Positions 9,851 to 64,000 of a stretch of DNA of 64,000 nucleotides are shown piece after piece. The notes under the pieces were generated by a model, which did not search any database, had not been told where the DNA came from, and saw nothing but the letters and a program-made list of their open reading frames with translations. Source of the stretch: Rebecca billardiae RCC1528 (Eukaryota; Protista; Haptophyta). The stretch is from NCBI GenBank assembly GCA_965240325.2, contig OZ251228.1:434001-498000 (forward strand), in the 5' to 3' direction. Numbering within the stretch: the first letter of the stretch is position 1; every line of letters begins with the position of its first letter. A program made the translations under genes and the position numbers.

Positions 9851-12800
9851 TCAGGCGCGCGCTGCGCGGCTGTCGCCGACGTCCAGCCGGGTGTGCGCTG
9901 CCGGGGGACGATGTGCGCACGCGTGTCGACACTCGCCTTCGCCTGCGCACGGACGCCGCGCGCGTGCGACACGCGTCATCACGTGGCGCGCCGCGCGTGG
10001 CAGTGGCGCATGGGCGCACGCGCCGCGGAGGGCAGCTGCGCGCGCGCGGCGCACCGTTGCGCGTCGAGCCGCCTGGCGCTCGAGAAAGCGCTGCTGCCGG
10101 GCCGCCGCATCGGCGCCGAGCCCGGCCGTCTCGGCTGGTACGAGGAGGAGGCCGCCGCGCGCCGCCGAGGACTCGACAAGCGAGGGAGCGCTCGGCGCGG
10201 CGCTTGGCACGGCGCCCTCCGAGTCTCCCGCGAGCGCGGACCAAGACGGTGAGGGTGGCGCGGAGGGCTGCTGCCGCCGCGCCACGGATCACGCGGGGCA
10301 CGGGACGGGGCCGGCACGGGGTGTCGATTAGAGGGCGTGGGCGGCAGTCGCGCGGGCGGGGTGGCAGGCTGCTTGGCGGGGCGATGGGCGTGCAGGCGCC
10401 CTGGGTGGTCTGCAGGGCATGGGCTGGTGCACGAACGCTCGCCGCGGCGCGCGGGACGCGTGCCGCGGGGCGTGATGGGCCTCACCTCGCGCGCTGCACC
10501 CCGGCGCCCATCGACGCTCTCGGCATCCGCGCCCGAGAGATCGGCGCTGCTCCGCAGGTCGCTCTTGCCGCCGCGGCCACTGACGCCCTGTCGAGCATGC
10601 CGGGGCGGTGAGGAGTGCGCAGTCGCCGCTGGAGCTGACGCGCGCTCGGAGGACTCCTGCTGCGCGGCAGCGCACTTGCCCAGCGCGCCCACGACGGACG
10701 CCGGCGTGTTGGCCGCGACGCGCGCGTCGCCCAGCGCCCGCCGCACGAACGGGTGCGTGTTCGAAGCGACGTACTGCTCACGCAGCGCGCGCGCCACGCC
10801 CGCGGACACGGGCCCGCCACGCGCCGGCCGCGGCGCGCTGCCGCCGTCGCTGTCGTCGGCGTGCTCGTCCTCACTGCTGTCGGCAGCAGCGCGCGCGCCC
10901 GAGCTGCCCCGTGCGCGACCGTGCTCGGCATCGCCACGTGCGCTGCCGCCGCCGCCGCCAGCATCGACGTCGGCATCGTCGTCGGCACCGCCATCGGCCG
11001 CGCCCTCGGCCCAAGCCTCGTCCGCAGCGGCAGCCGCGCACTTGCCCAGCGCGCCCACGACGGACGCCGGCGTGTTGGCCGCGACGCGCGCGTCGCCCAG
11101 CGCCCGCCGCACGAACGGGTGCGTGTTCGAAGCGACGTACCGCTCACGCAGCGCGCGCGCCACGCCAGCGGACACGGGCCCGCCACGCGCCGGCCGCGGC
11201 GCGCTGCCGCCGTCGCTGTCGTCGGCGTGCTCGTCCTCACTGCCGTCGGCAGCAGCGCGCGCGCCCGAGCTGCCCCGTGCGCGACCGTGCTCGGCATCGC
11301 CACGTGCGCTGCCGCCGCCGCCGCCAGCATCGGCGTCGGCATCGTCGGCATCGTCGTCGGCACCGCCATCGGCCGCGCGCTCAGCCCAAGCCGCCCTGCC
11401 CACCCGCGGCGCCTCGTCCGCAGCGGCAGCCGCGCACTTGCCCAGCGCGCCCACGACGGACGCCGGCGTGTTGGCCGCGACGCGCGCGTCGCCCAGCGCC
11501 CGCCGCACGAACGGGTGCGTGTTCGAAGCGACGTACTGCTCACGCAGCGCGCGCGCCACGCCAGCGGACACGGGCCCGCCACGCGCCGGCCGCGGCGCGC
11601 TGTCGTCGTCGCTGTCCCCATCCGCCGCAGTCGCGCGTGGCTCGGCGCCGGAGCTGCGCAGCGCGCCCCCCGCGCCGCCACCCTCTGCGCGGGCCGCGCC
11701 GCCGCGGGCGTCGGCGCCCGCTCGCGCGCCGCCCTGCGTCGAGCGCGCAAACTGCCGCTCAAGCGCGTCAGCGACGGACGGCGGGATGGCCACCGAGGCG
11801 GCGTACTCGGCGAGATAGGTATCTCGCATCCGGGAGGCGAAGGAGGCGGGGGCCTCGTGCGAGGACTCGCGCGACGCGACGGGCGGTGGCGACGCTGGCG
11901 ACTCGGAGCCGCTCCCGCTGTCGCTCGAGCCCGTACAGGCGTCGGTGCGGGCGCGCGCGCGGCTGGGTGGCTCTGCGTTGCCGTGCCTGTGCGCGTCGCA
12001 GGCGGCGCGGCGCGTGGCGGCGCGCTGTGGAGCCACCTCGCCGCCGCCGGCCACCTCGGCGGCGGCTGCGCTGGCGGTGGAAGCATCGGCGGTCGTGGGC
12101 TTGGTGCAGTCGCCCTTGCCGCCCCCCTCGGCCGCCCGGCCAGCGGCTTCGCCTCCGAGCGCGCGCTGCGGCACGCTCACCGCCTCCACGGCCACGCCGG
12201 CCACGACGTTCGTTCGCGCGCCGCCGCTCTGCGTCGGCCCCGCGGCCAGCCTGTCGCGCAGCGCCGCGAGCACCGAGGGCGCAACGGCGCCGCCCGCCTG
12301 CTCGCGGGCGCGTGCCGCCGCGTGCTCCGCCGCGCGCGAACTGTCCTCTGCCACGCGTCCATCACCGGTCGTCGTGGTGTCCGGCGGCGCCGGTGCGGAC
12401 GTCGGCAGGGCGGAGCGCATCGCTCCCGCCGAGCCGTCGCTCGCAGCAGCGTCCGGCTTGGGCTCGGCGCGAGGCAGCGAGCTCGCCGCCGCGCGAGACA
12501 GCCGCAGCGTGCTCCGTCGCGCCGAGCCGAGCCCAGCGCTGCCGCCTGCGCCCGCGCGCTCAGCGCCCGCATCCGTCGAGGTCACGGCCCGCGAGCGCGC
12601 GCCCGCGGGGCCTGACTCGTCTGTCGGCGCAGCACCACGCACCGCCCCCGTGCAAGCGGGCGGGCGGGCGCCCCCAGGCATCATCGTGACGATCTGCTGC
12701 AGCCCCAGCACCGACGACTTCATCTCACGGATCGCCGCGCTCAGGCACTCGGCGCGCGCGAGCTCGGCGCCGTGCCGCGGGTCCAGGCCCACGCTGGCCC

Positions 12801-13891
12801 GAGCGAGCGGGACGGGGGAGGCGCCGCCGCTGCGCTGTGAGCTCCGTGCTGGGCTCGCGCGTGCGCGCGGCCCGTGCTCGTGCTGCTGCGCCTCCGCGGG
12901 AGCGACGGCGGCAGCGCCGACGCCCTCGCTCGCGTGCGCGCGGGCATCGGCCGCGTGCCGGGCGCCAACTGCCGCCGCGGCGGCCGCGCCGACCGAGCCC
13001 GCGGCCGCCGCGTCGGCTGCGGGGCGCAGACCGTCAGTCGAGACAGTGCCCACGACTTGCGCCTGGGTCGGCGCGTCCGGCAGGGCGGCGGCCGCGTCGA
13101 CTGACGCGGCGGGCGCGAGGACCGCGCCCGTGCCCAGCCCGCCCGGCGCGCCACCGCCGCCCTCGCGCTCGGCAGCATGCGCACCGACGCTGCGCACAGC
13201 CCACGGCTGCGCGCCGCCCGCCGCCGATCCAGCCGACGACGTCGCCGGTGAGCCAACTGTCAGCGGCTCCCCGCCCTCGCCCAGGTCTTGCGCCGGCAGG
13301 CGGTCCGGCGAGCCGTCGGCGTGCGCGCGTGCGCCGGCGCGAGCGCCGCGCCGCGCCGCCATGATGGCGTCCGCTTCCTCCGCCGCGGCCTGCATGCGAG
13401 CGAAGAGCTCGTCAGCACTCGCCTCCGTCGGCCTGGCAGCGGCGCGCGCAGCGGCGGGCGCGGCGGGCGCGGCCGAGGCGCGGCGGCCCGTCGGCGCGGC
13501 CGAGGCTGAGGCATGGTCGATGCCGCCCGCGGCTGGGGCGCGGGGCACAGGGCTCGCGGCGCGCGCGGGCTGCGCGGGCGCGGCCAGGGCAGCTGAGCCA
13601 GCAGGGCGCTCAGCCGAAACACGACGCCGGCTGTCCTCCTCCGCCTCGGCCTCGGCCTCGGCCTCCGCATCCGCCTCCGCGTCCGCGCGCACAACAGGCG
13701 CCGCAGCGCGGGTCACCGCCGCCGCTCCGGTCGTCGTCGTGCTGGCAGCCTGCGCCTCCTCCGCCGCCTCCTCATCCGCATCGGCATGGCTGTCGCCGTC
13801 ATTGGCAACTTCGCCGTGCGCGCCACCACCGTGAGCGCCGCCGCTGCGAGTGGCACTGTCGTCGCCATTGCCCTCACGGCTAGCGGCGCCG

Positions 13892-13940
<49 letters not shown>

Positions 13941-16740
13941 TGTTGTCGCCATCGTCGGCCTCGCCCTCATCGAGCGCACCCTCGTCCTCCGCCCAGCCGG
14001 AGCCGTGCTTCTCGGTCGCCGAGGCCGAGACGCCCTGCTCCTCCCCGTGGACCTCCTCCATCGCATGCCCGAGCGCAATGCGCCCATCCGCCGGCATGCC
14101 GCCGCCGCCGCTGCCGCCGCCGCCGCCGCCGTCGCCCGCGCCGTGCACAGCACCGCCGAGCCCAAACGCGTGGAAGAGATCGGCGAAGACGTCACCGCCG
14201 CCATCGTGCGCGGCTCGAGGTGCGCCGCTCGGCGCCGCGGCGCCGCCGTGCCACGCCTCGCCGCCCTCGGCCCGCCCCGCGCCGAGTGCGCCGTCCGCGT
14301 GCCGCGCGCGGGGCGCGTCACCAGCATGGCCGCCGCCAGCATGGCCGCCGCCGGCGTCTCCCCAGCTCCCCTCTGAGCCCTCCGCCTCGAGGGCCGCTGG
14401 GAGGCCCCAGTGCGCGGCGGCGGGGATGCCGAGCGCGCGTGCCGCCGCCTCGAGCGAGACCTCCGCATCGCCGCCGGCCTGGCGGGTAGCATGGCTGCCG
14501 GGCGCGCCGGGCGCCGCCGCCGGGCTCGGCGGCGGGGAGGTGGAGGCATCAGCTGCAGCCGCGGCGGACACGACGAGAGCGGTGGCGTCCTCGGCCGAGC
14601 CGGGCGGCGCGTGGCCCTCCGCGCCGGCGAGGAGGGCGAGCCCGCCCACCTGCGTGCTCACCGACGTCGTGCGCGCGGTACCGGCGTATCTGGCGGCCGC
14701 ATCGGCGGACGGCGCACAGCGGCCCGCAGCGTGCGAACGTGCGGCCGCGCCGCCGAAGAGGCTGGGCGCGTGCGCCGAGCCGTCGGCGTCGGCCGCGCGG
14801 CGCGCGGCGCCGGGCGAGGCGCCGAGGAGGGCCGAGATCTCGTCAAGCCGGCGCCGAGTCGGGCTGAGCCCCTCGAGGCCACGCTCGGCGCGCTCGGTGC
14901 GCGCCGCCGCCTCGGCCGCCTCGCGCAGCGCGCGGTCCGGCGAGTGGCAGGTAACGGCCGCAACGGCCGTAACGGCCGTAACGGCGCACCCGCCCGCGGC
15001 AGACCGGCGGCCGCCGCCTGCCGCGTCATGCCGAGCGCGCGCCGCGCTGTACGGCGGCGAGCTGCCGGCGTAGCGCTGCGCGCCGCGCGCCGCGCGCGCG
15101 CCGCCTCCCGGCGCCGCGCCCGTCTCCAGCTGAGCGAGCGACACGCGCGCCACGTCGCCGTCCGCGCCGCCGGGCCCCACGCGGCGCGCATGCTCCACCC
15201 AGGCGTCCGCGGCCGCGGGCGGGCGGTCAGCGGAGGCCGTGCCGGCGGCAAGCTGAAGCGTCTCGACGGCAGAGGCGTGGCCGAAGCCGTCCCCGTGGGC
15301 TGTCTCGAGGTCCGCGCCGCGAGCGCTGCGCCAGAGCGCGCCGTGAGCCTGCGCGTCGCCGCCGCCGCCGCCGCCGCTCGCTCCCGCCAGCCGGCGATCG
15401 CCCGACCCGCCCGGCCGTGCCGCCGGTGGCGGCGCAGGCGCCCACTGCCGCCGCCGCCGATCCGCGCCGGCTGCGCCACCGGCGGGCAGCGCGTGCGCGT
15501 CCTCCTCCGCGCGCGCGCGCGTCTCGGCAGCCGCCGTGCGCAGAACCCCGGCGCAGTGGTGCCGCGACGTCGCAAAGTCTGCTGCGGCGCTGCCGCCGCG
15601 GTGTGCGCCCGCCGCGCCCGGCGCGACTCGGCCGCCGACGGACGCTGCGAGGGCAGGCTCGCGAGGCGCGGCGTCGGGCGTGGCGTGCTCGCGCTCGCGC
15701 TGCAGCGCCACCGCGCGCGCCGAGCGCGCCGCCTCCGCCTGCGCCGCCGCCGCGCGGAAAGCCGCCGCCTCCGTCGCGCGCGCGTTCACGCTCTTGCGCT
15801 CACGCGTCGCCGCGTCCGACGCGCGCGCGAAGCGCTCGAGCTCGTGCGCACGGCGCTCGTCGCGGCGCGCCTCCTCCTCCGCCTCCGCGCGCGCGCGCGC
15901 CACGCGGAGGTCCTCCGCCTCGCGGTGCGCCGCGCCCATCTGCGCGCGCAGCGCCGCCGCTTGCGCCTCGAGCTCGGCCTGTCTCGACTCGTGCGCTGCG
16001 CGCTGCGCCTCCACCTCCGCCGCGGCGGCCGCGACCGTCTCGGACGCGCGCAGGGCACGGTAGCGCTCGCGCGCGCGGTGCGCGAGCTCGCTCTCGCGCC
16101 GGCGCACGTGGATCAGCCGCTCTGCGCGCTGCTGCGCCTTCGCCGCCTCGAGCATGCGCGACTCCTCGTTCGGAGACGGCAGCAGAAGCTTGCGGCGCGG
16201 CGCGGTGAGCTCCGCTCCGCGCGACGTGCCCGCGCCGCGCGCGGCGGACTTGGACGCGTCGGCCGCGGGCCCAGCCGACGCCGCAACGCGAGCGGCGGAG
16301 CCGAATGCGGACCGGCGGGCCGGCACGAGCGTGAACGGCGAGGACGCCAGCTGCCCAGGCGCGCGCTTGGTGGCTGCGGGCGCTGGCCGGACAATCGACA
16401 TCGGCGTGCGCTCGATGCTCGAGTGCACGCTGCCGCCGCCGGCGGCGCAGGCGTCGCGGGCGGATGGTGACGGTGTGAACGCACCGATCGCATGCCACGG
16501 CCTCGCCGCTGCCCATGGCTCGGCGGGGCGCGCGCGCGGGCCTGCGGGGCCGTCATTGGCCGCGCTCGCGCTGAGCACGTGCGGCGAGAGATAGGCTGCG
16601 CGACGGCGGGCGGGCGCGGGCGCGGGCGCGGGCGCGATGGATTGGTGCGCGCTCACGCCGCACGTTCCAACCCCCCGCGCGCGCGACGGCGGGGTGCGCG
16701 CATCTGCCGCTCCGCGCGGCCCCGCACCGCGTGCTTCCAT
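9851..16740 (-). CDS. Very large low-complexity protein with CEP295/Ana1-like N-terminal coiled-coil domain; both ends uncertain
   Basis: Uninterrupted frame of more than 2000 aa (ATG candidates 16740 and 16401). LPSPNEESRMLE...RAERLIHVRRRE...LRAQMGAAHREA recalls human CEP295 LSPNEE...RKLRLLQVREQE...LRSMGEGHRQA. Likely phase-0 intron 10485 to about 10271, with a terminal exon ending near 9851. Confidence 0.65.
10670..11612. repeat. Near-identical coding tandem repeat, about 366-396 bp unit, about 2.5 copies
   Basis: GCGCACTTGCCCAGCGCGCCCACGACGGACG recurs near 10670, 11036 and 11432. It encodes APRPARGGPVSAGVARALREQYVASNTHPFVRRALGDARVAANTPASVVGALGKCAAA three times. Confidence 0.92.
13894..13939. 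repeat. (GTC)n trinucleotide repeat encoding poly-Asp on the minus strand
   Basis: Direct reading of the sequence. Confidence 0.9.
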
Positions 16741-32839: not shown

Positions 32840-35800
32840 ATGGGCTCACCGCCCGGCGCACCCTCCGGCGCCGGTGCGACGGGCGCGAGCACGGCGGCCG
32901 CGCGCGCGCAGCGGCCTCTTGGCATTGCTGCTTTCTTCGCCGCGCCGGAGGAGAGCAGCCTGGAGCAGCTCGCGATCTCCGACGGCGAGTACGAGGAGTG
33001 GGCGCTCGAGCTTGGTGGTAAGAGCCCGCTGCGGCTGCCGTCGCTCGCGCCCACGCCCAAGCGCCAGCGCGCCGAGTCCACCCTCGCACACGACGCTCGC
33101 GAACCTATGTCAGCCGGCGGCATGCTCAGCGCGCTCGGCAGCGGCAGCTTCGCGCACAGCTCGCCGATGAGCGGGCAGCGCGCGGTGGCGCTGTTCGGCT
33201 CGTCGCCCCTGCGCACTGCTCTCGAGGTGCCCTCCCCCAACCTCAGGTGCCGCGCGCTCGCGCGCGCTCGCGCCGTCGCCCGAGCGTGCGGCCCACGCGC
33301 TGCGGCTGCGGCTGCGGCTGCGGCCACCTCCCAGCGGCTGACACTCCGCCCCGTGGCGGCGCGCGGGTGCTCGCGCGCGCTCATCCGCGCGCGCAGGGCC
33401 TCGCCGCTGCGCCTCTCGCGCGCCAGCCTCGGCCTGAACCCAGCGCCGTCGGCAGAGCCGCCTCAGCTGCCGCCTCAGCAGCTGCGGCCGCCGCAGCCGC
33501 CGCAGCCGCCGCAGCCGCCGCAGCCGTCGCAGCCGCCGCAGCCGCCGCAGCCGCCGCAGCCGCCGCAGCCGTCGCAGCTGCCGCAGCCGCCGCCTGCCGC
33601 GCGGCGTCGTGGTGAGGAGCACAGCCACAGCCAGCAGCCCGCACTGCCGGCGCAAGCAGACCCAGCGCTGCCGCCCCCGGCCAAATCGCGGAGCGGCAAG
33701 CGCCCTCCGTCCTCAAGCCGGTCGCGCGCCAAGCTGAAGGCGAGGCAGCGCGCGCGCGTGACCGCCGCCACGCGGTCCGCCACGGCGCACGCGGCGTCGA
33801 CGGCCGCGTGTGCGCATGCGTCGGCCGCCGATCTGCCACCGCAGCCTGACGGGCGGCCGCAGCCGCCGCGCGCACTGCCGGAGGCTGACGTGTCGCGGGC
33901 GACGCCGACAAAGGCCGGCAGCGTCGGCTGCGGCGTCGGCGTAGGCGGCGCGAGCGACGCACACGCTGCCCTGCTCCCACCTGCCGTGCTCTCCCGCCCC
34001 TCGCGGCAGTGGTTCCCACAGGGCTCGCTGGCGACGGCGCCGCGGCCGCCAGAGCATGACGCGTCGCCGTCGGCGTCGCCGCTCGCGCCGCGCGCCGCGC
34101 CGGCCGCCGAAGGCTGCGCCGAGGCTGTCAAGCGGCGCAGCTCGCTCGGCGAGCGCGCGCGCGCCGCCACGGCCGGGCCCATGGGCGCGCGCAGCCAGCG
34201 GCGCGCGCAAGCCGACGGCAGCGCCGCCGCCGCCGCGCCGGCGCAGGCGGGCGCGCCGTGGGTTGAGAGCGCAGCTGCACTCGCGCCCGAGCGCGCTCTG
34301 CCCGCACCCCTCCCGACAGACGCGCAAGCCGAGCCCTCGGCAGCGCCGGCGCCCAAGGCGGCCCGTGTGACGAAGCGCGGCGCGCGCGCGGCGGGCGGCG
34401 CGCGCGCTGGCGCGGCCGCCGACGCGTTCCTGCCGCCGTGCACCCCGCCCCGCTCGCCGCTCTTCGGCTGCGGAGGCTACAGTTACAGTTACAGTTACAG
34501 CGGGGACGCCGGCGCGACCGACGCGAGCTATGCCGCCACAACCGCCGCCGCCGCCGCCGCGGCGCTCCCGGTCGACCCGGCCGCGCCGCCGCTGCTGCCA
34601 TCCAGCCCGCTCGGTCCCATCGGCCTGACCTCGCTGCTCGAGGCGGGGCCGCACGAGTTCGGCCTGCTCGACCTTCTCCTCTCCGTCGACGATGGCGTCG
34701 TGTCGGGCGCGGCGCGGCCGGCACTCGGCCACGAGCCGAGCGCCGCGCGCGCGGCCGAGCCAGCGGCTGGCGCAGCCGCGCCGGGCGCCGCCGCGTCCGG
34801 GCTGTTGCCGAGCGCGCAGCCGGACGTGCGGCAGCTGGAGGAGCGGCTGCGCGCGTGCTTGGGCGCAGGCGCGGGCGTTGCGCCCGCCCGCGCCGCCGGC
34901 AGCGGAGGCGGAGGCGCGGGCGGAGGCGGCGGCGGTGCCGGCGGAGGCATGTGGGCAGGAGAGCCGCTCCCAGGCTTGGTGCCGCACACCCCGCCGCCGA
35001 GGCCCGCGTCCGCCTCCGCCGCGCTGGCCGCGGCGCTCAACCTCTCTCCGTACTCGTACTGCCCGCCGCCTGCGCCGGGCGCCACGCCGGGTGCAGCGCC
35101 GGGCGCGGGCGGTGCGCTGGCTCGGGCGGCGCAGGCCTCGATCTCGCCTCTGAGACTTGAGCAGTGCGCGGCCGCGCGGCCGGCGGCGCACGCGCGCATC
35201 GCGGCTGGTGAGCGCGGGGCGCACACGCCGCTCCCGCCGCCGGCCGGTGCGGCGCCGGCCTCGCCGTGCGCGCACGCCCTCGCACACAGCGCCGCGCCGC
35301 TGCCCGCGCCGTGCGCGGCCCCGACGCTGCCTCCGCCGTGCGCGCACGCGGGCGCTGCAGCGGCCCGCTCGGCCGCACACCCAGAGACGCCGGATGCGTG
35401 CGGCCGTTACGCAGACGGTTACGCCGACGATCACGCAGACCGTTACACCGGCAGCTATGCGGGCTGCTGCTCCACGCCCGTGGCGAAGGCGGCAGCCGGC
35501 GGCAGCGCGCCGCTGCCGCCTCCACTCGGCGCCGCGCTCACGTCGCCGAGCGCGCCGGCCGCGACGCCGCGGCCGGCGCCGCAGCCGCGGCAGCAGCCGC
35601 CGCCGAGCACGCCGGTGTCACTGCTGGCAGCATGGCTGCCGTCGGGCCCGGCACAGCTGCGCGCGCCGAGCGGCGGCGGCAGCCTGCTGAGCCCTGCAGC
35701 GGAGGGCTGGCAGAGGCAGCCAGGCGCAGCGTGCTGCTGCGCCGCTCTGGACACGCCCAGCGCGGCGGACGGAGGAGCAAAGGCCGCGCTGCCGCCGCCT

Positions 35801-37084
35801 GCGACCAAGAGCGCCAACTCGGGCGGAGGGCGCGCTGCGGGCGGTGGCGGGGCGAGTCGGCGCGACGTGGACGCCGAGGCTGCTGGGCGCCGAGCGGGTG
35901 GCGACGACGCGAGCGGCGAAGCGTGCCCGCCGCCGCCCGGCGCGGGCGGCGACGGCCGCGCGCCGCGCCGCGCTGCGGCCGCGGCCCAGGCGGCGGCCGC
36001 GGCGGGTGGCACCCTTGCCACGCCGTGCGCTCACGCGTCCAAGGCTGCGGCCGCGGCGCTGTCCCCGCCGTGCGCGGCGAGCGCGCACGATGCGCACGAG
36101 CGCGCGCGCATCTCCTTCATCACGCTGCCGTCCGCGTGGGTTCGGCGCGACGGTGCGCGCGCGCCAAGTCTGCGCGCCTCGCGCAATCTCGCGCGATCTC
36201 GCGCGGTCTCCTGCGCCAAGGCGCGGTGTGCGCGCGCGCTGGGAACCCCGCGCACGCGCGCAGTCGCTCACGCGCGCACCGCCGCGCTCGCTCGCTCCTT
36301 GCCTCCGCGCCCGTCCATTTTCTTCCCCTCCGTGCGCGCAGCCGCGCACGCGCGCGCCCAGGCGGCCATTCGCTTCTCAGTGCTCGTGGGCGGCTCGAGC
36401 GCGCAGCCACTGGGCGCGCCGGGCGTTGGCGCGACACTCGGCAGCTTGAACGCGCAGATGGGCGCGCTGCGCGGCGCGCGCGCACGGGAGTACGCGGCGG
36501 CCGACGGCGCACTCGGCACGGCGGGTGTGAAGGACGAGCCTTCGCAGGCCGATCAGCATGGCTGCCAGCAGCATGGCTGCCCCGCGGGCGGCTGCACGGC
36601 TCCGCGGTGCGCAGGCGGCGCCGGCGGCGCGGGCGGCGCGGGTGGCGCGTCTGCGTGCGGCACGGAAGGCGGCGCGCTGCCGGGCGTCAATGCCGAGCCC
36701 GTGCCGAGCGGCGGCGCGGCGCCCGAGGATCCGGCGCACGACGCAGCTGGCGGCGAAGCGAGCGTGGCGCACAAACACGCCTCGGTCACTCAGGGCGGCC
36801 CGGCCGCGTCGGCGCGCGGCGTGTGGCGCGCGCAAGCGCCTCTGAAGCGGCTGCGGCCGATGCCGACGCTGCCGCCGCCGCCGCCGCCGCTGTGCCAGCA
36901 CGGCGCGCCGCCGACGGCGCGCGTCGAGCCCGGCACCAACTGCCACCCCCTCGCGGCACACCACGCCGCGCCGCAGCCCTCGGCGTGCGACGCTTTCCTG
37001 GCGCCGCGCGAGGAGGCCTTGACGCCGCCACCGCCGTCATGGGCACCAGCAGCGCCGGCGCGAGCGTCGCATCCTCCCTCGCTG

Positions 37085-37115
<31 letters not shown>

Positions 37116-38544
37116 CGCGCGGCGGCGGGGCGGACGGCGCGTGCGCGGCGGCCGTCAGCCTCGCGTCCATCCTCGCGCCCTCGCCGCTGCCCGGCGCCGA
37201 GCAGCTCCAGACGTGCGCGGGGTGCTGTGTCGCGCGCTTCGTCTCGGGCCACGGCCCGCTGTGCGCCTCCTTCGGCGACGGCCGCGCCTCGCCCGTCAGC
37301 CCGTTGCAGCTCGAGAAGCAGCAGCCACCGGCGGGCGCGCGCCGCGCCGCGCTGGAGGCGGAGGCCGCGCGGCGCGGCGCGGAGTGCGCGGCGGGCAGCG
37401 CCGCGGCGCACGGCTTCGGTGCGTGCGATGCCGGCCGTGCAGTGCGCGGCGTTCGCGCGCGGCGCAGCACGCGGGGCCCTGCGCGCCGCGCGGGCAGGGC
37501 AGGCCCCATGCACTTCCAATCGCGCCGGCGCGCGCCGCGCTGACGCGCCGCCCCCTCGTGTCTCTCGCGTGCGCGTGCGTGTGCGCGCCGTCCGCTCGCG
37601 CAGGCACGGGCATTTTGGGCGTGCCCGCCGCCGCCGCCGCGGCGATGCGGAAGACGCGGCTGGGCCGCGCGCGCCGCGCCGCGCCGGCCGCGCGCACGCT
37701 CCACTTCCGCCTTGCCAACGGCCAGCTCACGCAGCTGGGCGGCGCGTCAGCCGATCCTGCCCGCAGCCCGGGGCTGGCTGTCGCCCATTTCGGCGGGGCG
37801 CCGCGCTGCGCGACCGCGCCGCCGCCGCCGCCGCCGCCGCCGCCAGCCTCGCACGGCCGGCCCGCGCAGCCGAGCACCGCCGCGCCCGCCGCGTCGCAGC
37901 GTGCGCACCGCAGCACCTCGTCGTCCGAGGTCAAGCAAGCCCGCCTCGCGCCCAGCTCAGTGGCAGTCCCTGACATGAAAGGCGGCGCAGGTGCGCCCAG
38001 CCGGGCTGATCCCCTGAGCCATGGCGCACACCACGACGCGCCGGCCGCGCCCGCGCGCGGCACGCCGGCCCCAAGCGGCGGGGCGTGCCTGCCGACGCAC
38101 GCGGCTGCCGAGCGCGGCGCCGCGTGGCGAGGGCTGTCCACTCGGCAGCCGCCCCCCGAGCCTGCTCGCTCACCTCCGCTGCCGAGTGACGCCGCGCTCG
38201 GCGCAGCAGCCGCAGCCGGCCGCGCCCGCGCCGAGCACGCGATGGCGGCGGCGGTGGATGCCACCCGCCATCCGCCCCAGCAGCAGCAGCAGCAGCGCGC
38301 CGCCCCGTGCGCACCACCGGGCAGCGGCTGCGCGCACGCGCAGCAGGGCCCGCCCGCCGACAGCTCGGAAGCGGCGCCCAACCCAGCCCCCGCCGCAACG
38401 GCCGCGGCTGCGGCACGGAGCATCCCGCTCCTGGCCCCAGTCGAGTCCTTGCCCGCGTCCGCCACGCTCCGTGTGCGCGTGGTCAAGGAGCCGCAGTGGC
38501 GCCTGCCGCCCTCACACGCCCGCTTCGGCCTGCCGCCGTCGTGA
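32840..38544 (+). CDS. Large Pro/Ala-rich low-complexity hypothetical protein (about 4 exons)
   Basis: Long open frames joined by phase-compatible GT-AG introns 33247-33396, 36140-36361 and 37419-37603. Many SP/TP sites. No recognisable domain. Confidence 0.6.
33458..33594 (+). repeat. 9-bp coding minisatellite, (CCGCCGCAG)n = (PPQ)n
   Basis: Direct reading of the sequence. Confidence 0.85.
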
Positions 38545-55021: not shown

Positions 55022-55962
55022 CGCCGCTCGACTTGCCGACCTCGACGCGCTGCTCACGACTGGTCCGAAATCGTCAGTCGAACCGTCCGACGCGGACCAT
55101 GCATGCGGCGCAGCGTGCGCCGCCGTATCAAGACTCATTCCCAGTAGTGGACGTCACTCGTCAGCGGATAGATGAGCCTTAATCACGCCTTAACCAAGTG
55201 ACAGTGTGCACTACGTTAAAACATAGTAAACTGTGGTTGTATAACCGCTCGGTTATGCGGGTATAACTCACCGGTAGCTAGCCCTCATGAGGGCGGGCTG
55301 GCAGCCAGGGTCCGGCTGCCTGGAGGTTTTCCGGTCGTCAAGCCGAGCCAGGCCCGGATTGGGCGCGGGTCTGGATTTGCTCAGCAGCTCGGCAAGCGAT
55401 GCGCGTCTGGGTGCGGCCGCGCTCGCTGGCTGCACCCGCGGCGCGGCGGCCGGCGTGGCTGCTCTGGTCACCGCTGCGCTGGTGGCTGCTCCTCCTCTGG
55501 GAGTTGTTTCTCCCTGCCCTCCCACCCTGCTGGTTGCTGGGTGGGCATGGCCTTGGGTGCGCGCGGTGTCGGGGGGGTGGAGGCCCTCGAGGCCTCTGCC
55601 TCCTGCGGCGCCGCGCTCTGCCCAAACTTGCGTTGGGGGGGGCGTCGGCTGCCAGCGCCTGCGGTCTACGTGCTCCATCGAGTACTTCCTCTTCGGCGTC
55701 TAGGCGGTCATCGGCTTCTGTCGGCGTAGTTGCTCGAATGCATCGGCGAGTCCTTCCTGGTCGGCGTCGCTTCGGGGGGTGACCTAGTCACCTCACGCGT
55801 TTATCAACGCGGCCCCCACCTCAATCTACTCTCATGTGGGTCTACCGACTTTACGCACACAAGCTTGCAAGCGGTCGCTCGGCAAGGCTCGCACAGCCGA
55901 CCTGGTCCGCCCCGGCCAGGCCCCGGCCGGACGAGTGCGCGGCTCGCGCGCGAATAATCACG

Positions 55963-57543
55963 ATGCCCGCGCTCGGCCGGCTTGTACTCGTCGCCCTCGT
56001 GGCGTGCGCGCCCGCAGGCGTCGGCGCCGCGCGGCCTCGCTCGCTCAGCCGCGCCGGGAGCGGCGCGGCGACCTCGCTCTCCGCCCTCGCCGCCGGCAGC
56101 ACGCCGCCGCCGCCGCCCGCGCCCGCGCTCACGCTGCCGCCGTGCCGCACGCTCGTGGGCGTCGCGGCGGGCTGCCTCGGCGCGCTCCAGTTCGGGTACA
56201 GCCTGGGCGTGGTGAACGCGCCGCAGGAGGTCATCTCGCGCGCGATCGGCATCACCGACACGCCCACGCGCTGGGCGGCCATCGTGTCCGTCTTCGGCCC
56301 GGCCGGGCTCGTGGGCGCGAACGGCGCGGGCGCGCTCGTGAGCGAGCACGGCGCGCGCGCGGTGATGGTCTGCACGGCATTCGGCTTCCTCGCGGGCGGC
56401 GCGCTGATGTGGCTCGCGGGCGGCGCGTCCTACTCCGCGCAGGCCGCGTTCTGGCTGCTCGTCGCCGGCCGCGTCTGCGTCGGCGTCGCCGCGGGCATCG
56501 CGACCGTCGCCGTCCCAGTGTACCTCGGCGAGAGCGCGCCAGTGCACCTGCGCGGCGCGTTCGGCAACCTGAACCAGATGGGCGTGGTCGTGGGCATCCT
56601 GCTCTCGCAGCTGCTTGGGGCGGCGCTCTCCACGCCGCGCGGCTGGCGCGTGCTCATGGGCGCGCCCGCGCTGCTCGGGCTGCTCCAGCTGCTGAGCGCG
56701 CCGCTTCTGCTCCCGTCTCCCGCGCACCTGCTACAGAGCGGACAGCGCGCGCGCGCGCTCGAGGCGCTCGAGCGGATGCGCCCGCGCGGCACGAGCGCGT
56801 CGACGCTCGCGTCCGAGCTGTCGGCGCTCGCGTCGTCCGTCGCCGACGCGCCCGCGCGTGGGCGCAACCGCCGGCGCTCGGCGCAGCCGGCCGCGTCGGC
56901 GTCCGCGCTCGTGGCCGCGCGCTCGTCGCGCGCCGTGCGGCGCGCGCTCGGCCTCGGCGTGCTGCTCATGCTCGCGCAGCAGTTCTCGGGGATCAACGCA
57001 GTGTTCTTCTACTCGACGGCGATCTTCCGCGCGGCCGGCCTCTCCTCGCCAATCGTCGGTACCCTCGTCACCGGCGTGGTCAACGTCGTCTCCACCGCGC
57101 TCGGCGTCGGCCTGGTGGAGGTCTGTGGCCGGCGGCCGCTGCTGCTGGTCGGGATGGCGGGGATGGCCGTGTGCGCGCTCGCGCTCACCGGGCTGCTCGC
57201 GGCGGGCGCGGCGGCGCCGGCGTGGCTCTGCCTGCTCACCGTGTGCGCCTCCGTCACCTTCTTCGAGATCGGCCTCGGCTCGATCCCGTGGCAGATCGGC
57301 AACGAGATCTTCGAGCCGTCGTGCCGCGCGTCCGCGATGGCTCTGTGCGCGGCCGTCAACTGGCTCGCCACGTCCGTGGTCGGCTTTGCGTTCCCGCTGC
57401 TGCAGCGCTCGCTCGGCCAGCTGTGCTTCGTGCCGTTCGCCGCATGCCTCGCCGTCGCGTTCGCCCTCACCCAGCGCTTCCTGCCCGAGACGAAGGCGCG
57501 CACGATCGGCGAGATCCAGGAAGCGCTCGGGGCCGCGGACTGA
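55963..57543 (+). CDS. MFS sugar porter (GLUT/hexose transporter-like) with N-terminal targeting extension
   Basis: LQFGYSLGVVN, PVYLGESAPVHLRGAFG, QQFSGINAVFFYST, GRRPLLL, GLGSIPW, LPETKART. Confidence 0.93.
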   Translation: MPALGRLVLVALVACAPAGVGAARPRSLSRAGSGAATSLSALAAGSTPPPPPAPALTLPPCRTLVGVAAGCLGALQFGYSLGVVNAPQEVISRAIGITDTPTRWAAIVSVFGPAGLVGANGAGALVSEHGARAVMVCTAFGFLAGGALMWLAGGASYSAQAAFWLLVAGRVCVGVAAGIATVAVPVYLGESAPVHLRGAFGNLNQMGVVVGILLSQLLGAALSTPRGWRVLMGAPALLGLLQLLSAPLLLPSPAHLLQSGQRARALEALERMRPRGTSASTLASELSALASSVADAPARGRNRRRSAQPAASASALVAARSSRAVRRALGLGVLLMLAQQFSGINAVFFYSTAIFRAAGLSSPIVGTLVTGVVNVVSTALGVGLVEVCGRRPLLLVGMAGMAVCALALTGLLAAGAAAPAWLCLLTVCASVTFFEIGLGSIPWQIGNEIFEPSCRASAMALCAAVNWLATSVVGFAFPLLQRSLGQLCFVPFAACLAVAFALTQRFLPETKARTIGEIQEALGAAD

Positions 57544-58483
57544 CGAGGAGGCGTGAGCCGGCTGACGACCGCTGAGGGCCTGTCTGGCGGCCTGAGCCCT
57601 CCGGGTGCCAACGTTCCTGAGGCGCCCCTAAGGCCTCACTGACGGACAACGCCGCGGACACACCGTCTCGAGCCGACTGCGAGTTGTACATACTAGCGCA
57701 TACGACGATATATGATGACAAGTGATTTCAGAGATGATGCATCATCATCATTAATGACGCGCGCGTCAATAAATAATCAAATTATTCAGCAGCAGCTATA
57801 TATATGTGGCGTTATAGGGAACCTATATAACTGAGTGTCTATGAGCGACGCCAAGAATCCGGCTCGCACGGCATTCCTGCGTTGTCCTGTGCGCACCACC
57901 GCGCGCAGGAGTCCTGGTGCGCTGCCAATCTGGCCCACAGCGGCGCACCTGCAGGACTCGGTTGGTTACCGCTCACATCGGATCGATCAGGCTTCGCTCT
58001 CGGGGGCGCCATGGGGCTGCTCACGACGAAGGCGCCGAGCTGGGCAAGGGAATCGCCTGCATCGAGCACTGCCGGGTGCACTCTCCGCTGCAGGAGGTGC
58101 ACCGCAGTCGCGCAGCCCCTCTGCTCGGTAAGGTCGCTGGCTGTCTGTGTGGCCCGGCTCCCCGCCTGATCGTTCGGCGGCGCGACGACATCATCTACGC
58201 TGTCTTCGCCGCGTCGCCCCTCATGCAATATGGTCTCCTGCTCTCGCCGCTGTCGCGTCAACCAGCACGCTTCATCGTTTGAGATACGCGCTCGCCTCGC
58301 GCCCGTGCGTCGCGCGGGTGCGGCGCACTCTGACGCGTGTCTGCTCGCCGCGCGTCGCGATCGATCGTGCGCGCGCGGCCGCGCAGTCCTCGTCTCTTCT
58401 ATTTCTAAACGGGATTCATCAACGACTACTTGGACGCCCGCTCCAACTTATAAACGGGACTCGCGGGCGCCCTCTCGACCTCG

Positions 58484-58588
58484 GGCAGCAGCTCAACCGC
58501 CACGCCGCTGCCAGCGCCCGCTGTCGTTCGTTGCTCAGGCAGCAGCTCAACCGCCACGCCGCTGCCAGCGCCCGCTGTCGTTCGTTGA
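58484..58588. repeat. 54-bp direct tandem duplication
   Basis: GGCAGCAGCTCAACCGCCACGCCGCTGCCAGCGCCCGCTGTCGTTCGTTG occurs twice. Confidence 0.88.
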
Positions 58589-58919: not shown

Positions 58920-61651
58920 CTACACCATCGAGTCGACGACCATGTCGCCTGCAGGCGGCGCCATCCGTGGGGGACGCACAGCCCCCGACTGCGTGCTGGA
59001 CACAGAGCCCGTGTCGCTCCCGCGCTTGTCACGGCGGCCCGCGCTCGCCACGCTGAGCGTGTCGCTGGCGCGTGTAGCGCGGCGCGCTGCGCTGCGCTCC
59101 TGTTCGGCGCGCGGCGGCTCGCTCGCGCGCCGAGCGCGCGAAGCCGGCGAGAGGCTGGGGCTCACATCGGCGGTGTCGGTGGGGCTCTTGGTTGGCGGCG
59201 AGGGCGAGCGGCCGCGCGACGACGAGCGGGCGCGGCGCGAGAAGCTCGCGCCGCTGAACGAGCCGATCAGGCCCGCCTCCGTCACGCTGCCATCCGCGGC
59301 GCCGGTGACCTGCGCGCCGCTGCCGCTCGGGCGCATGCTCCGGATGGTACGCAGCGCGCCGGACATGCTGTACTCGATGGTGGGCGGCCTGCTCAGCCCT
59401 CGCAGCGCGTGGCGCACGCGCTCGCTGAACGCCTCGGCGCCGCCCGACGACGCCTCGATCACCGCGAGCAGCCGCTCCGTGTCCTGCTGCAGCGAGCAGC
59501 CGGCGTCCATCACGTCAAAGTTGTCGAGCAGCTCGTCCAGCGTCCACTGCGTGTGCTCGCCGTCCAGGTCGGACTGCGAGGCGACGTCCGAGTCGGCGGG
59601 CGTGGGGTCGTCGTCCACGTCGGTCGCGCCGGCGATGTTGATCGGGTAGACACTGGTCATGCGCTGCGGCGCCTCCGCAGCCGGCGCGTGTGCCGCCGGC
59701 GCCGGCTCGGGCTGCGGCTCCGGGTAGAGCTCCGCAGGGGCCACTACGGCCGTCTCCCGCGCCGCGCCAGCGGACGCCGTGGGCGGCGGCGGCATCCGCC
59801 GCCGGCGCCACGATCGCGGCGCGATCGACGCCAGCTCTCTCAGCTCAATCCTCGCGCGGTCGCCGCCCATGTTGAGGAAGATGAAGAGCTCGACGACGCT
59901 GCGGATGGGCGGGCGCGCGGGCCGGGCCGGGCGCGCTGGGGTGTGAGCGCGCCGCGGGCGGAGGGCGAGCGCGCGGCGCGGCGCGGCATGCGCGGCGCGG
60001 CGCCACCGCGCGCGCACCACCACAGCCGCGTGAGCAGCGTCGGCCCCATCAGCACGAGCAGCTTGTCGCACCCGGCCAGGTATATGGGCAGGCACGGCAG
60101 CGAGTCCGAGATGCTCTCGGGGTTGAGGCACGCCTTGTCGAGCCACACGACCGGCTCGCGGTGGTTGCGGGCGACAAACTCGGCGCGCCACGCCTGCAGC
60201 GCCTCCCACTTCTCCGAAGCGTCGTCGTGCCACGAGTGCGTGATGAACGCGTCGACGCTGCCGAAGCCCGCGTGCCGCGAGCACGCGTGCAGCTCGGGCA
60301 TCGGCGCCGCGCTCCGCAGGTGCTCCTCGCAGATCAGGTCCAGACGGATCCCGCGGAAGGTCGACCGCGCGAGCTCGTGCACCTCGTTCACGGGGCGCGC
60401 GTTGAGCAGCGCGGCGATGCCCGCCGCGACGCTCGCCGGCTCGCCGTGCGAGTCGAGCCACGCGTGCATCGCGGTGCGTCGGCTCGGCGTGAGCAGCGCC
60501 GCCAGCAGTAGCGCCTCGGCCATCGCAACGTACCGCAAGACCAGCGCAGCGCGCATCTCCGCCCAGAGATGTTCGATAGGGAATCGCAGGTGGAAGAGCG
60601 CACCGCGCGCGGCGAGCAGCGCGGCGGCGGACAGGAGGAGCGTGCGCAGCACGCGCCACAGCCCGTCGAGCTGCACGCGCGGCGGGCGGCCCAGCTTGGA
60701 GACGACCTCCACAAGCAGCAGCAGGGCGACGAGCGCGCCGCCCACGGCCGCAGCCAGGCTGCCAATCTCGAACCAGCAGGGCACGAGGGTGAGCGTCGGG
60801 CTGTGCGCGCCAAACACCGAGTCGGAGCAGCGCGGGTACTCGCGCGCGATCGCCTCCACCAGCACGATGCTCGCCCACACGTACGCGGCGAGGATCGCGA
60901 GGGCGAGCAGGGCACCGGCGAACATCGTGCGCTGGATGCGCACGCAGTCGGTCGGCAGCAGCGAGAGCATCAGCACAACGACGCCGGGGAAGAGCAGCGT
61001 CGCGCCGCGCGCGTCGTCGTACATGACCTCGAGCACGCTCCCCGCCAGCCCGAGCACGGCGCCCGCCGCGATGGTCGGCCTGTGCACGCGCGCGGAGAAG
61101 CGGCGGCCTGCGAGCTTCGACGCCTCGAGCGCGGCGCGCACGGTCTCCTCCGTGCGCTCGGGCGGCGGCTCGCGCACGCCCGAGGCCCTGCGCGTCGAGC
61201 CGTGCGCGTCCGCCACCACACGCGAGCTCCTGCCGCCACCAAACCGGCTGGCCAGGAAGGGCGATATGCCGCGGGACGGTGGCTTGCGGCCGTGCTTGTG
61301 CGCGTCGCGATGCGCGTGCCCGTGCCGCCCGGTGGGCCTGCCCGGCAGGTGCGCCGAGGACGCCCGGCCGCGCGCGAGCCGCCCTGGCCGCGCTGCCTTG
61401 ATCACTGGCGACGCGTTCAGCGAGGCCGTCGTCGCCCGCCCGCGTGCGAGCCGCCCTGCCGTGAACTCTGGCGTCGGATGCTGCAGCGAGGCCGTCGCCA
61501 CCCGCCCGCGCTTCAGCCGCGTCGCCGGCTCGCCCGGCGTGGATGCGCTGGAGATCTGGGCGGCGCTCGTGCGCGAGTGGGCCGAGGTCTCCCTGGAGCT
61601 CGCCGAGGTGATGCGGTGGCTCGGCATGGGGCGCCGCGCGGCGGCGAGCAT
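58920..61651 (-). CDS. Multi-pass membrane protein with cytosolic TIR-like domain, copy 1 (2 exons)
   Basis: Exons 61651-60018 and 59898-58920. The GT-AG intron restores RLWC-VVELF. About 6 hydrophobic helices, then DAFITHSWHDD...VWLDKACL...LPIYLAGCDKLLVLMGPTLLTRLWCVVELFIF, then a Ser/Pro/Arg-rich tail. Confidence 0.8.
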
Positions 61652-62196
61652 GGCACCGCTCGCACACACCTCGTCGCGACGCCGGCGCGTGGCGTGAGGT
61701 GGCGGCAAATCTCGCAGGCGATCTCGCAGTTGGAATCGATCGAGGGGAATCCTATCATCATAATACTGAAGGTGCCGAGGCGATGAATCGCAAAAATACC
61801 TGCCTCGCTACTCATTGGAGTAATTAGAAATCACCTTGTACGTAAGCGGTTCATTCAACGACATTGGGTAACTCTTGAGATGGGGTGCTTAACGACGACC
61901 TTCAACCTTGGTGACCAACCTATTTGTGATGATGAGAGCCGAAAATGAAACATTAGTATCGAATGTTGTGTGATTATGTCGTTCGCTTTTTGGGCGCCCC
62001 CATGTTGCCGTGACTCGTGAGCTGGTGAGCGTCCTAGAAATCAGGGGATCTGCCTCGGAAATATTTTGCACGATTCTTCGTCAATCACCGGATTGCCCCT
62101 GTTTAAGCTCGGCATGAAATGAGCCAACCAAGCTCTTCACAAGAGCTGCTCTTTCCAAAGGATTGCTCTTTCGTTCGATCATCTAATTATAAGATG

Positions 62197-62330
62197 TCTT
62201 ACGACGCGGCAACAGTGCCGCACAGTTCTTGAGAAGCGCTCGTCACCCCGCCACAGCAACCGTATGAATCTTACGACGCGGGGCAACAGTGCCGCACAGT
62301 AGTGAGAAGCGCTCGTCACCCCGCCACAGC
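62197..62330. repeat. ~61-bp direct duplication (period about 72) in the divergent spacer
   Basis: TCTTACGACGCGG(GG)CAACAGTGCCGCACAGT...TGAGAAGCGCTCGTCACCCCGCCACAGC occurs twice. Confidence 0.85.
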
Positions 62331-62398
62331 TGCGTGGGCAAGGAGTCAAGGACACCTATTCGCCGGCGCCTCGCGGCGAGCCGGGCGCGCGCGCACCG

Positions 62399-64000
62399 AT
62401 GGCGAGCGCGAGGAGTCCCATGCTCGTCACCGCGAGCGGTGCCATGCTCGCCGCCGCGCGGCGCTCCATGCCGAGCCACCGCATCACCTCGGCGAGCTCC
62501 AGGGAGACCTCGGCCCACTCGCGCACGAGCGCCGCCCAGATCTCCAGCGCATCCACGCCGGGCGAGCCGGCGACGCGGCTGAAGCGCGGGCGGGTGGCGA
62601 CGGCCTCGCTGCAGCACCCGACGCCAGAGTTCACGGCAGGGCGGCTCGCACGCGGGCGGGCGACGACGGCCTCGCTGAACGCGTCGCCAGTGATCAAGGC
62701 AGCGCGGCCAGGGCGGCTCGCGCGCGGCCGGGCGTCCTCGGCGCACCTGCCGGGCAGGCCCACCGGGCGGCACGGGCACGCGCATCGCGACGCGCACAAG
62801 CACGGCCGCAAGCCACCGTCCCGCGGCATATCGCCCTTCCTGGCCAGCCGGTTTGGTGGCGGCAGGAGCTCGCGTGTGGTGGCGGACGCGCACGGCTCGA
62901 CGCGCAGGGCCTCGGGCGTGCGCGAGCCGCCGCCCGAGCGCACGGAGGAGACCGTGCGCGCCGCGCTCGAGGCGTCGAAGCTCGCAGGCCGCCGCTTCTC
63001 CGCGCGCGTGCACAGGCCGACCATCGCGGCGGGCGCCGTGCTCGGGCTGGCGGGGAGCGTGCTCGAGATCATGTACAACAACGCGCTCGGCGCGACGCTG
63101 CTCTTCCCCGGCGTCGTTGTGCTGATGCTCTCGCTGCTGCCGACCGACTGCGTGCGCATCCAGCGCACGATGTTCGCTGGTGCCCTGCTCGCCGTCGCGC
63201 TCGTCGCCGCGTACGTGTGGGCGAGCATCGTGCTGGTGGAGGCGATCGCGCGCGAGTACCCGCGCTGCTCCGACTCGGTGTTTGGCGCGCACAGCCCGAC
63301 GCTCACCCTCGTGCCCTGCTGGTTCGAGATTGGCAGCCTGGGCACGTGCGCGGGCGGCGGGCTCGTCGCCCTGCTGCTGCTTGTGGAGGTCGTCTCCAAG
63401 CTGGGCCGCCCGCCGCGCGTGCAGCTCGATGGGCTGTGGCGCGTGCTGCGCACGCTCCTCCTGTGCGCCGCCGCGCTACTCACTGTGTTTGCGGTTCTCT
63501 TCCACCTGCGATTCTCCATCGAACATCTCTGGGCGGAGATGCGCGTTGCGCTGGTCGCGCGGTACGTCGCGACGGCCGAGGCGCTGCTGCTGGCGGCGCT
63601 GCTCACGCCGAGCCGACGCACCGCGATGCACGCGTGGCTCGACTCGCACGGCGAGCCGGCGAGCGTCGCGGCGGGCATCGCCGCGCTGCTCAACGCGCGC
63701 CCCGTGAACGAGGTGCACGAGCTCGCGCGGTCGACCTTCCGCGGGATCCGTCTGGACCTGATCTGCGAGGAGCACCTGCGGAGCGCGGCGCCGATGCCCG
63801 AGCTGCACGCGTGCTCGCGGCACGCGGGCTTCGGCAGCGTCGACGCGTTCATCACGCACTCGTGGCACGACGACGCTTCGGAGAAGTGGGAGGCGCTGCA
63901 GGCGTGGCGCGCCGAGTTTGTCGCCCGCAACCACCGCGAGCCGGTCGTGTGGCTCGACAAGGCGTGCCTCAACCCCGAGAGCATCTCGGACTCGCTGCCG
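62399..64000 (+). CDS. Multi-pass membrane protein with TIR-like domain, copy 2 (3' end beyond the window)
   Basis: In-frame ATGs at 62399, 62420 and 62444. The frame is open to the window end and is paralogous to copy 1. Confidence 0.8.
   Translation, partial: MASARSPMLVTASGAMLAAARRSMPSHRITSASSRETSAHSRTSAAQISSASTPGEPATRLKRGRVATASLQHPTPEFTAGRLARGRATTASLNASPVIKAARPGRLARGRASSAHLPGRPTGRHGHAHRDAHKHGRKPPSRGISPFLASRFGGGRSSRVVADAHGSTRRASGVREPPPERTEETVRAALEASKLAGRRFSARVHRPTIAAGAVLGLAGSVLEIMYNNALGATLLFPGVVVLMLSLLPTDCVRIQRTMFAGALLAVALVAAYVWASIVLVEAIAREYPRCSDSVFGAHSPTLTLVPCWFEIGSLGTCAGGGLVALLLLVEVVSKLGRPPRVQLDGLWRVLRTLLLCAAALLTVFAVLFHLRFSIEHLWAEMRVALVARYVATAEALLLAALLTPSRRTAMHAWLDSHGEPASVAAGIAALLNARPVNEVHELARSTFRGIRLDLICEEHLRSAAPMPELHACSRHAGFGSVDAFITHSWHDDASEKWEALQAWRAEFVARNHREPVVWLDKACLNPESISDSLP

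Follow-up and report, generated by a model that had tools for sequence, protein, structure and literature searches.

Head-to-head copies of a gene for a predicted membrane TIR/HET-like protein in the haptophyte Rebecca billardiae

The DNA analyzed here is a 64,000-nt stretch of contig OZ251228.1 from the haptophyte Rebecca billardiae RCC1528 (assembly GCA_965240325.2, positions 434,001 to 498,000 of the forward strand), hereafter called the window and numbered from its first letter. Between position 58920 and the end of the window lie two copies of one gene in head-to-head orientation, which encodes a predicted multi-pass membrane protein with a TIR/HET-like domain. This arrangement is a real, recent, and lineage-specific inverted duplication of a single gene in a GC-rich haptophyte-type alga. 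We further consider it probable that the duplicates of this membrane TIR/HET-like protein form a mosaic generated by gene conversion or by templated patches, since base differences between them pile up in the stretch encoding the membrane block.

Inverted copies and the distribution of their differences

A repeat finder identified one long inverted repeat with arms at 60095-61663 (minus strand) and 62432-64000 (plus strand), 1569 nt each and 98% complementary, separated by a gap of 768 nt of unique sequence (61664-62431). The two copies are 97.6% identical and share the same layout within the visible part, in line with a preliminary description of this DNA, drawn from its letters, that had reported two inverted copies around a spacer of ~770 bp. 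Arm 2 ends at the window end, which is not the end of the contig, as the latter runs well past it. The features of the duplication are as follows.

62444..64000, plus strand: copy 2, truncated by the window end at ...PESISDSL
60509..61027, minus strand: divergent block of copy 1 (codons 209-381, 36 of the 38 differences), from the arm comparison
63068..63586, plus strand: divergent block of copy 2, from the arm comparison
61664..62431, no strand: unique 768-nt spacer between both start regions, with a GC content of 0.54 and no mirror symmetry

Base-by-base comparison of the arms uncovered 38 differences, of which 36 fall within codons 209-381, that is, within 519 nt (binomial P 2e-15). This block accounts for 22 amino-acid changes between the copies, P8S being the only one outside it, and codons 382-519, which encompass the linker and the visible TIR-like part, do not differ at all. 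The preliminary description had likewise reported one altered residue in the N-terminus, an identical TIR-like part, and about 22 amino-acid changes clustered in the transmembrane block, and every peptide pair that it quoted was reproduced. It had also mentioned a mere handful of synonymous changes, which needs correcting: although purely synonymous codons number only 6, the Nei-Gojobori method assigns 11 synonymous versus 25 non-synonymous differences to the block.

These counts correspond to a non-synonymous divergence (dN) of 0.070 and a synonymous divergence (dS) of 0.080 in the block, and the ratio of 0.88 obtained from this one sequence pair is indistinguishable from 1 (Fisher p 0.70). 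In the flanks, dS is 0.006 on the 5' side and 0 on the 3' side, and the block shows a 23-fold excess of synonymous differences (11 of 145 sites versus 1 of 284; Fisher p 4e-5). Although the N-terminal 158 aa show no conservation between species, they hardly differ between the copies; constraint is therefore not the cause of the clean flanks. Block and flanks differ in age at the DNA level.

Differences are also micro-clustered inside the block, with 18 of 35 neighbouring gaps measuring <=3 nt when 6.8 were expected (P < 5e-5). One patch holds 10 changes in 14 nt, and identical runs of up to 139 nt lie between patches. Four patches span 61008-61027, 60892-60901, 60735-60753, and 60600-60613. 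Furthermore, 6 of the 8 codons hit more than once are altered at the third base as well. Such joint alteration of third, first, and second bases in tight clumps fits the replacement of short DNA patches rather than stepwise selection on amino acids. Moreover, the variable positions of the helix block are unconserved across the protein family; with the block so poorly constrained, the excess of amino-acid changes does not call for positive selection.

The duplicated stretch starts only 12 nt upstream of the shared ATG, so the spacer is not part of the duplication, and its lack of mirror symmetry means that the upstream regions of the two copies differ. For copy 2, two additional ATGs lie in frame further upstream, at 62399 and 62420, and are not part of the duplication. 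Just upstream of this copy, the spacer also contains a direct repeat of ~62 nt with 92% identity (62197-62257 and 62269-62330), which might be part of copy 2's own promoter or 5' leader.

Gene model of copy 1 and architecture of the protein

Copy 1 is an intact two-exon gene. From the ATG at 61651 the minus strand is open to 60018, where the frame is lost, and exon 2 (59898-58920) resumes with VVELFIFLNMGG. Third-position GC stays between 0.84 and 0.98 in the exon 1 frame down to ~60020 and is then high in the exon 2 frame down to ~58950. The three closest proteins contain RRLWCVVEL uninterrupted; among the homologues used below, P0001 is from Diacronema, P0002 is from Pavlovales sp. CCMP2436, and P0003 derives from an MMETSP transcript, its source sequence matching the P0002 protein. 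The preliminary description had stated that copy 1 keeps RLWCVVELF. The motif is indeed kept, but it is not contiguous in the DNA and arises only once a 119-nt GT..AG intron (60017-59899) is removed. The exons of copy 1 were searched separately, not as one joined protein. Its parts, all on the minus strand, are listed below with the evidence for each.

60018..61651, minus strand: exon 1 (544 codons plus 2 bases), comprising the N-terminal low-complexity region, the six-helix block, and the start of the TIR/HET-like domain up to RLW; translation, third-position GC of 0.84-0.98 throughout, homology to P0001 and P0003 from residue 159
59899..60017, minus strand: intron of 119 nt, GT..AG, within the Cys codon of RLW-C-VVE; sequence, switch of the high third-position GC frame, unbroken RRLWCVVEL in homologues
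58920..59898, minus strand: exon 2, VVELF..., completing the TIR/HET-like domain and adding a Ser/Arg/Ala-rich tail with the stop codon; translation, third-position GC, tblastn of P0001 and P0003 (59403-59528)
61178..61651, minus strand: N-terminal extension of ~158 aa, low-complexity, with 22-24-aa repeats; direct repeats D1, third-position GC of 0.86-0.98, homology only from residue 159
60491..61084, minus strand: hydrophobic block, residues ~190-387, with roughly six predicted transmembrane helices; Kyte-Doolittle scan

The encoded protein is thus ordered as a disordered N-terminus, about six hydrophobic helices, the TIR/HET-like domain of ~250 aa, and a disordered Ser/Arg/Ala-rich tail, which agrees with the earlier view that the TIR-like part is joined to a transmembrane block: the domain comes after a multi-pass hydrophobic block. 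The N-terminal extension (residues 1-158) is coding as judged by its third-position GC, yet it is absent from the Pavlovales homologues. Imperfect 66-72-nt repeats at 61346-61527 (mirrored at 62568-62677) encode the 22-24-aa units (GRLARGRA...) within it. The Kyte-Doolittle scan placed hydrophobic segments at residues 219-237, 247-265, 299-317, 334-352, and 369-387, along with a weaker one at 190-208. Because Arg/Lys-rich loops occur on alternating sides of this block, the positive-inside rule predicts a six-helix N-in/C-in topology, in which both termini would be cytosolic.

The intron position within the TIR-like domain varies among relatives. Diacronema has it after W360 of the W-L-D motif (L001 11080-11493), and Pavlovales sp. 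CCMP2436 has it near WCVVEL (L002 ~11200-11485), as in the window. Two tandem 54-nt units with 98% identity occur at 58480-58587, ~330-440 nt past the stop codon of copy 1. The adjoining open reading frame (55834-57543, plus strand, 569 aa) encodes a major facilitator superfamily sugar transporter (Pfam Sugar_tr, E 9.8e-94), and there is no such transporter beside the homologues in Diacronema or Pavlovales sp. CCMP2436, hence no visible synteny. Elsewhere, the window stretches 10001-16000 and 34001-38000 have ~78-81% GC against the usual 62-72%.

Family and fold of the TIR/HET-like domain

A word-indexed search returned only three relatives, with 37-40% identity, namely KFE25_002610 of Diacronema lutheri and a single protein of Pavlovales sp. 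CCMP2436 in two forms. Exhaustive searching with a profile of the domain recovered 3433 cluster representatives at E <=1e-3, and 836 at 1e-30; most of the cluster representatives are marine sequences from metagenome or metatranscriptome contigs. The motifs F-x-S-H-S-W, W-x-D-K-x-C, and R-L-W-C-x-x-E are near-invariant across the family, and F76, S80, W81, W110, D112, P129, G143, R149, W151, C152, and E155 are invariant in a 105-row alignment. Copy 1 holds every one of these residues, and copy 2 holds those within the window. E155, the Glu of WCxxE, is found in 105/105 aligned members, and the motif in 146/146 scanned; in copy 1 this Glu lies at the start of exon 2, whereas the corresponding part of copy 2 is beyond the window.

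Where at least 200 aa precede the domain, as in 110 representatives, 2-6 hydrophobic segments are present in every case (110/110), and the combination of membrane block and domain is therefore the norm for this subfamily. Homology of the membrane block itself is weak but detectable in a subset of members, with identities across relatives of 23-33% for the helix block versus 50-65% for the domain. A language-model search with the helix block recognized no relatives, its best score (0.80) being at chance level. Shape searching of the ESM Atlas retrieved this 250-aa module from haptophyte proteins, where it is joined to H-NOX and to C-type lectin, and from TPR/Ank proteins of oomycetes and ascomycetes. 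The literature searched contained no description of a phytoplankton protein that couples a multi-helix membrane block to a TIR/HET-like domain.

When the 105 members were scanned one by one against Pfam, TIR_2 was matched by 18 (best E 1.2e-6), TIR by 1, and HET by 16 at E up to 0.01 (best 1e-3). A feature search similarly placed clusters named 'TIR domain-containing' and 'Heterokaryon incompatibility domain-containing' nearest to the domain. Sequence searches of the PDB yielded nothing relevant for either the domain piece or the 105-row profile.

The fold was modelled on residues 245-500 of the homologue P0003 with AlphaFold2 and the family alignment, which gave a predicted local distance difference test score (pLDDT) of 91.6 and a predicted template modelling score (pTM) of 0.89. 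A single-sequence AlphaFold2 model of the same piece was discarded (pLDDT 36). Foldseek against the PDB returned best matches that are nearly all TIR domains (best E 3.3e-3, probability 0.99), with RPP1, SNC1, RUN1, ThsB, SPARTA, AbTir, MyD88, and SARM1 among the TIRs matched. VIA-align ranked MyD88 at the top with Z 9.0 (122/135 residues, root-mean-square deviation 3.4), with AbTir at 8.8, RPPT-TIR at 8.0, and SARM1 and RPP1 at 7.9, and 50/50 of the entries listed are TIR domains. The invariant Glu sits in the model on helix 150-161, after strand 135-142; the catalytic Glu of plant TIRs and SARM1 is located on such a helix.

As modelled, the domain is a TIR-superfamily module, between TIR_2 and HET in sequence, that keeps a Glu at the position predicted to match the catalytic one of enzymatic TIRs. 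The preliminary description had anticipated a C-terminal TIR fold with a conserved WCxxE Glu, and had suggested an AlphaFold comparison with TIR_2 and SARM1. Both claims gain support, the fold from the homologue model, which matches TIRs including SARM1, and the Glu from its presence in the aligned members and in copy 1.

Known systems, alternative readings, and significance

Enzymatic TIRs, that is, plant RPP1, RUN1, and RPS4, bacterial AbTir, ThsB, and SPARTA TIR-APAZ, and animal SARM1, share with the modelled domain the same alpha/beta fold (Z 7-9, 114-146 residues aligned) and a W-C-x-x-E motif with the invariant Glu on the helix after the third strand. Some members of the present family match Pfam TIR_2, but the window's own protein matches no TIR profile. 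Unlike enzymatic TIRs, the present domain measures ~250 aa, its TIR core being flanked on both sides by further conserved helices, and is carried by a six-helix membrane block in place of NB-ARC/LRR, ARM/SAM, or Argonaute partners.

The fungal HET domain (PF06985) provides the other point of reference. Its three blocks SYxWG, WIDxxCIxQ, and RxWxxQE resemble SHSW, WxDKxCIDQ, and RLWCxxE of the present domain. The HET matches among family members are nevertheless weak, and the window's own protein has none. HET proteins are also fungal and mostly soluble or NLR-linked, whereas the present family comes from marine protists and is membrane-embedded. The literature treats HET as a distant homologue of TIR that carries out cell death in a manner not yet understood (PMC10890737, PMC4986451).

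Closer in layout is Dictyostelium TirC, a membrane-tethered TIR NADase that becomes toxic once its tether is removed (PMC13142454). Both proteins have a hydrophobic N-terminal membrane part followed by a TIR with the Glu, which is cytosolic with a catalytic Glu in TirC and predicted to be cytosolic here. The TirC tether restrains a toxic NADase, and the membrane block of the Rebecca protein would act in a similar way. However, TirC is anchored by one helix, and its TIR is of the CAP12/Pycsar type and bacterial in origin, in contrast to about six helices and a HET-like TIR subtype in the present protein. Among haptophytes, TIR-domain genes of Gephyrocapsa huxleyi change expression during virus infection and resistance, and have been proposed as antiviral candidates (PMC12489294). 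Some of these proteins have a predicted extracellular region or a modelled intracellular TIR, and the conserved Glu is kept; they were chosen by their matches to Pfam TIR families.

As regards gene arrangement, head-to-head plant NLR pairs of the RPS4/RRS1 type are likewise placed around a short shared intergenic region, with a TIR-type domain in both partners. Those pairs are old and diverged sensor and executor partners. Unlike them, the present copies are 97.6% identical duplicates with unrelated upstream sequences and neither NB-ARC nor LRR. No second copy was found within 10 kb on either side at four related loci (L001-L004: P0001 of Diacronema, P0002 of Pavlovales sp., and two metagenomic relatives), each of which has a single gene, and the head-to-head pair is therefore local and recent. 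The earlier suggestion of a system reminiscent of paired plant NLRs fails on these grounds, namely near-identical copies with the same architecture and single-copy related loci, and the partners are not differentiated in the manner of sensor/helper NLR pairs. We regard the architecture of membrane block plus TIR/HET-like domain as a new form of a familiar type, and the pair itself as an ordinary product of inverted duplication and conversion.

In the mosaic that we favor, either gene conversion between the two arms would have homogenized the flanks or the duplication would be very young, with the helix block carrying older or imported DNA as short multi-base patches. Alternatively within the same reading, a young duplicate may have received short templated patches from more distant paralogues. 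Patchwork gene conversion had been the preliminary description's second option, and the patch clustering and the enrichment of synonymous change in the block fit it. Its other option, diversifying selection on the sensor, is not supported by this pair: dN/dS in the transmembrane block does not exceed 1, a result that the description itself had taken to speak against selection, and synonymous change is concentrated in the same block. On such a reading, the copies would be a young receptor pair in which selection favors new specificities of the ligand-sensing helix bundle, especially its outer half, and leaves the signalling domain unchanged. The contrast of 22 amino-acid changes in the block with none in the TIR-like part would suit it, as would the several changes that alter charge or polarity (DD to NN, R to L, AARGA to TVFAV), the location of most changes in outer loops or outer helix halves by the predicted topology, and the 7 non-synonymous versus 1 synonymous differences at codons 209-260. 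Yet the block ratio does not depart from neutrality, synonymous change is equally concentrated there, the patches alter all three codon positions together, pointing to replacement at the DNA level, the variable positions are unconserved across the family, and the largest outer loop (residues 266-298) is the same in both copies. We therefore hold diversifying selection to be quite improbable as the explanation. Even less credible, and in our view very improbable, is that the inverted copy is an assembly artefact, that is, a haplotype or fold-back error. No read set spanning the locus was recovered, and copy 2 extends past the window, but a fold-back error would yield a perfect palindrome rather than arms around an asymmetric unique spacer of 768 nt, the differences are patterned and not random errors, and the contig continues well beyond the window. 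The one public run found, which contains 6% of the words, contributed two 151-nt contigs that match exactly, 61447-61597 and 61587-61737, which give weak support and are silent on inversion and expression; the latter crosses the junction of copy 1 and the spacer without a mismatch and may derive from the source sample.

With respect to function, enzymatic TIRs and the membrane-tethered Dictyostelium TirC (PMC13142454) suggest by analogy, as the most likely mechanism, that the domain would be cytosolic and kept separate or inactive by the membrane block. Clustering, or a change in that block, would then bring TIR domains together, and the assembled domains would consume NAD+ or make an NAD-derived signal. 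The domain could instead be a non-enzymatic adaptor or cell-death module, acting through protein-protein assembly as animal TLR/MyD88 TIRs do, or like fungal HET, with no NAD+ cleavage. Such a role would be compatible with the top structural match being an adaptor, the MyD88 TIR, with HET matches among members being nearly as frequent as those to TIR_2, and with the unknown mode of action of HET (PMC10890737). We deem it unlikely, as the Glu of WCxxE recurs in 105/105 aligned and 146/146 scanned members, a pattern typical of enzymatic TIRs, and the enzymatic AbTir, SARM1, RPP1, and SPARTA lie within 1 Z unit of MyD88.

Several observations weigh against the interpretation of the locus as a mosaic duplicate of a membrane TIR/HET-like protein. 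Pfam found no family at E up to 1 in the window's three protein pieces, and the fold model is that of a homologue 50% identical over the domain rather than of the window's spliced protein. The Z scores of 8-9 are only moderate, and the equivalence of the Glu is based on motif and helix position rather than on residue-level superposition. The exact patch sequences were not found elsewhere in the window, so no donor lies within these 64 kb, and the 7:1 ratio of codons 209-260, although not significant, leans the other way; from two sequences, selection at a few sites may have occurred, but nothing requires it. Finally, read-level evidence for the locus amounts to the two matched 151-nt contigs.

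In bacteria, plants, and animals alike, TIR domains serve as central enzymes of immunity and cell death. Examination of their roles in marine phytoplankton is only beginning (PMC12489294, PMC13142454), and a 2026 preprint describes uncharacterized, highly diverged TIR clades confined to eukaryotes (PMC13142454). A bolder extension, which we offer as a long shot, is that the multi-helix block would be a true membrane sensor, e.g., of a lipid, an ion, or a viral envelope component, gating a TIR-type NAD+ enzyme within a very large undescribed receptor family of marine phytoplankton, in which local duplicates such as this pair would acquire new specificities through the exchange of short patches in the bundle's outer half. 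The pair itself mainly shows ordinary genome dynamics, with inverted duplication followed by conversion. The locus nonetheless represents a clean, intact example of a large uncharacterized subfamily, comprising at least 3433 cluster representatives, in which an invariant-Glu TIR/HET-like domain is combined with a multi-pass membrane block, and it supplies two natural variants of that block on an identical effector domain, convenient for functional comparison.

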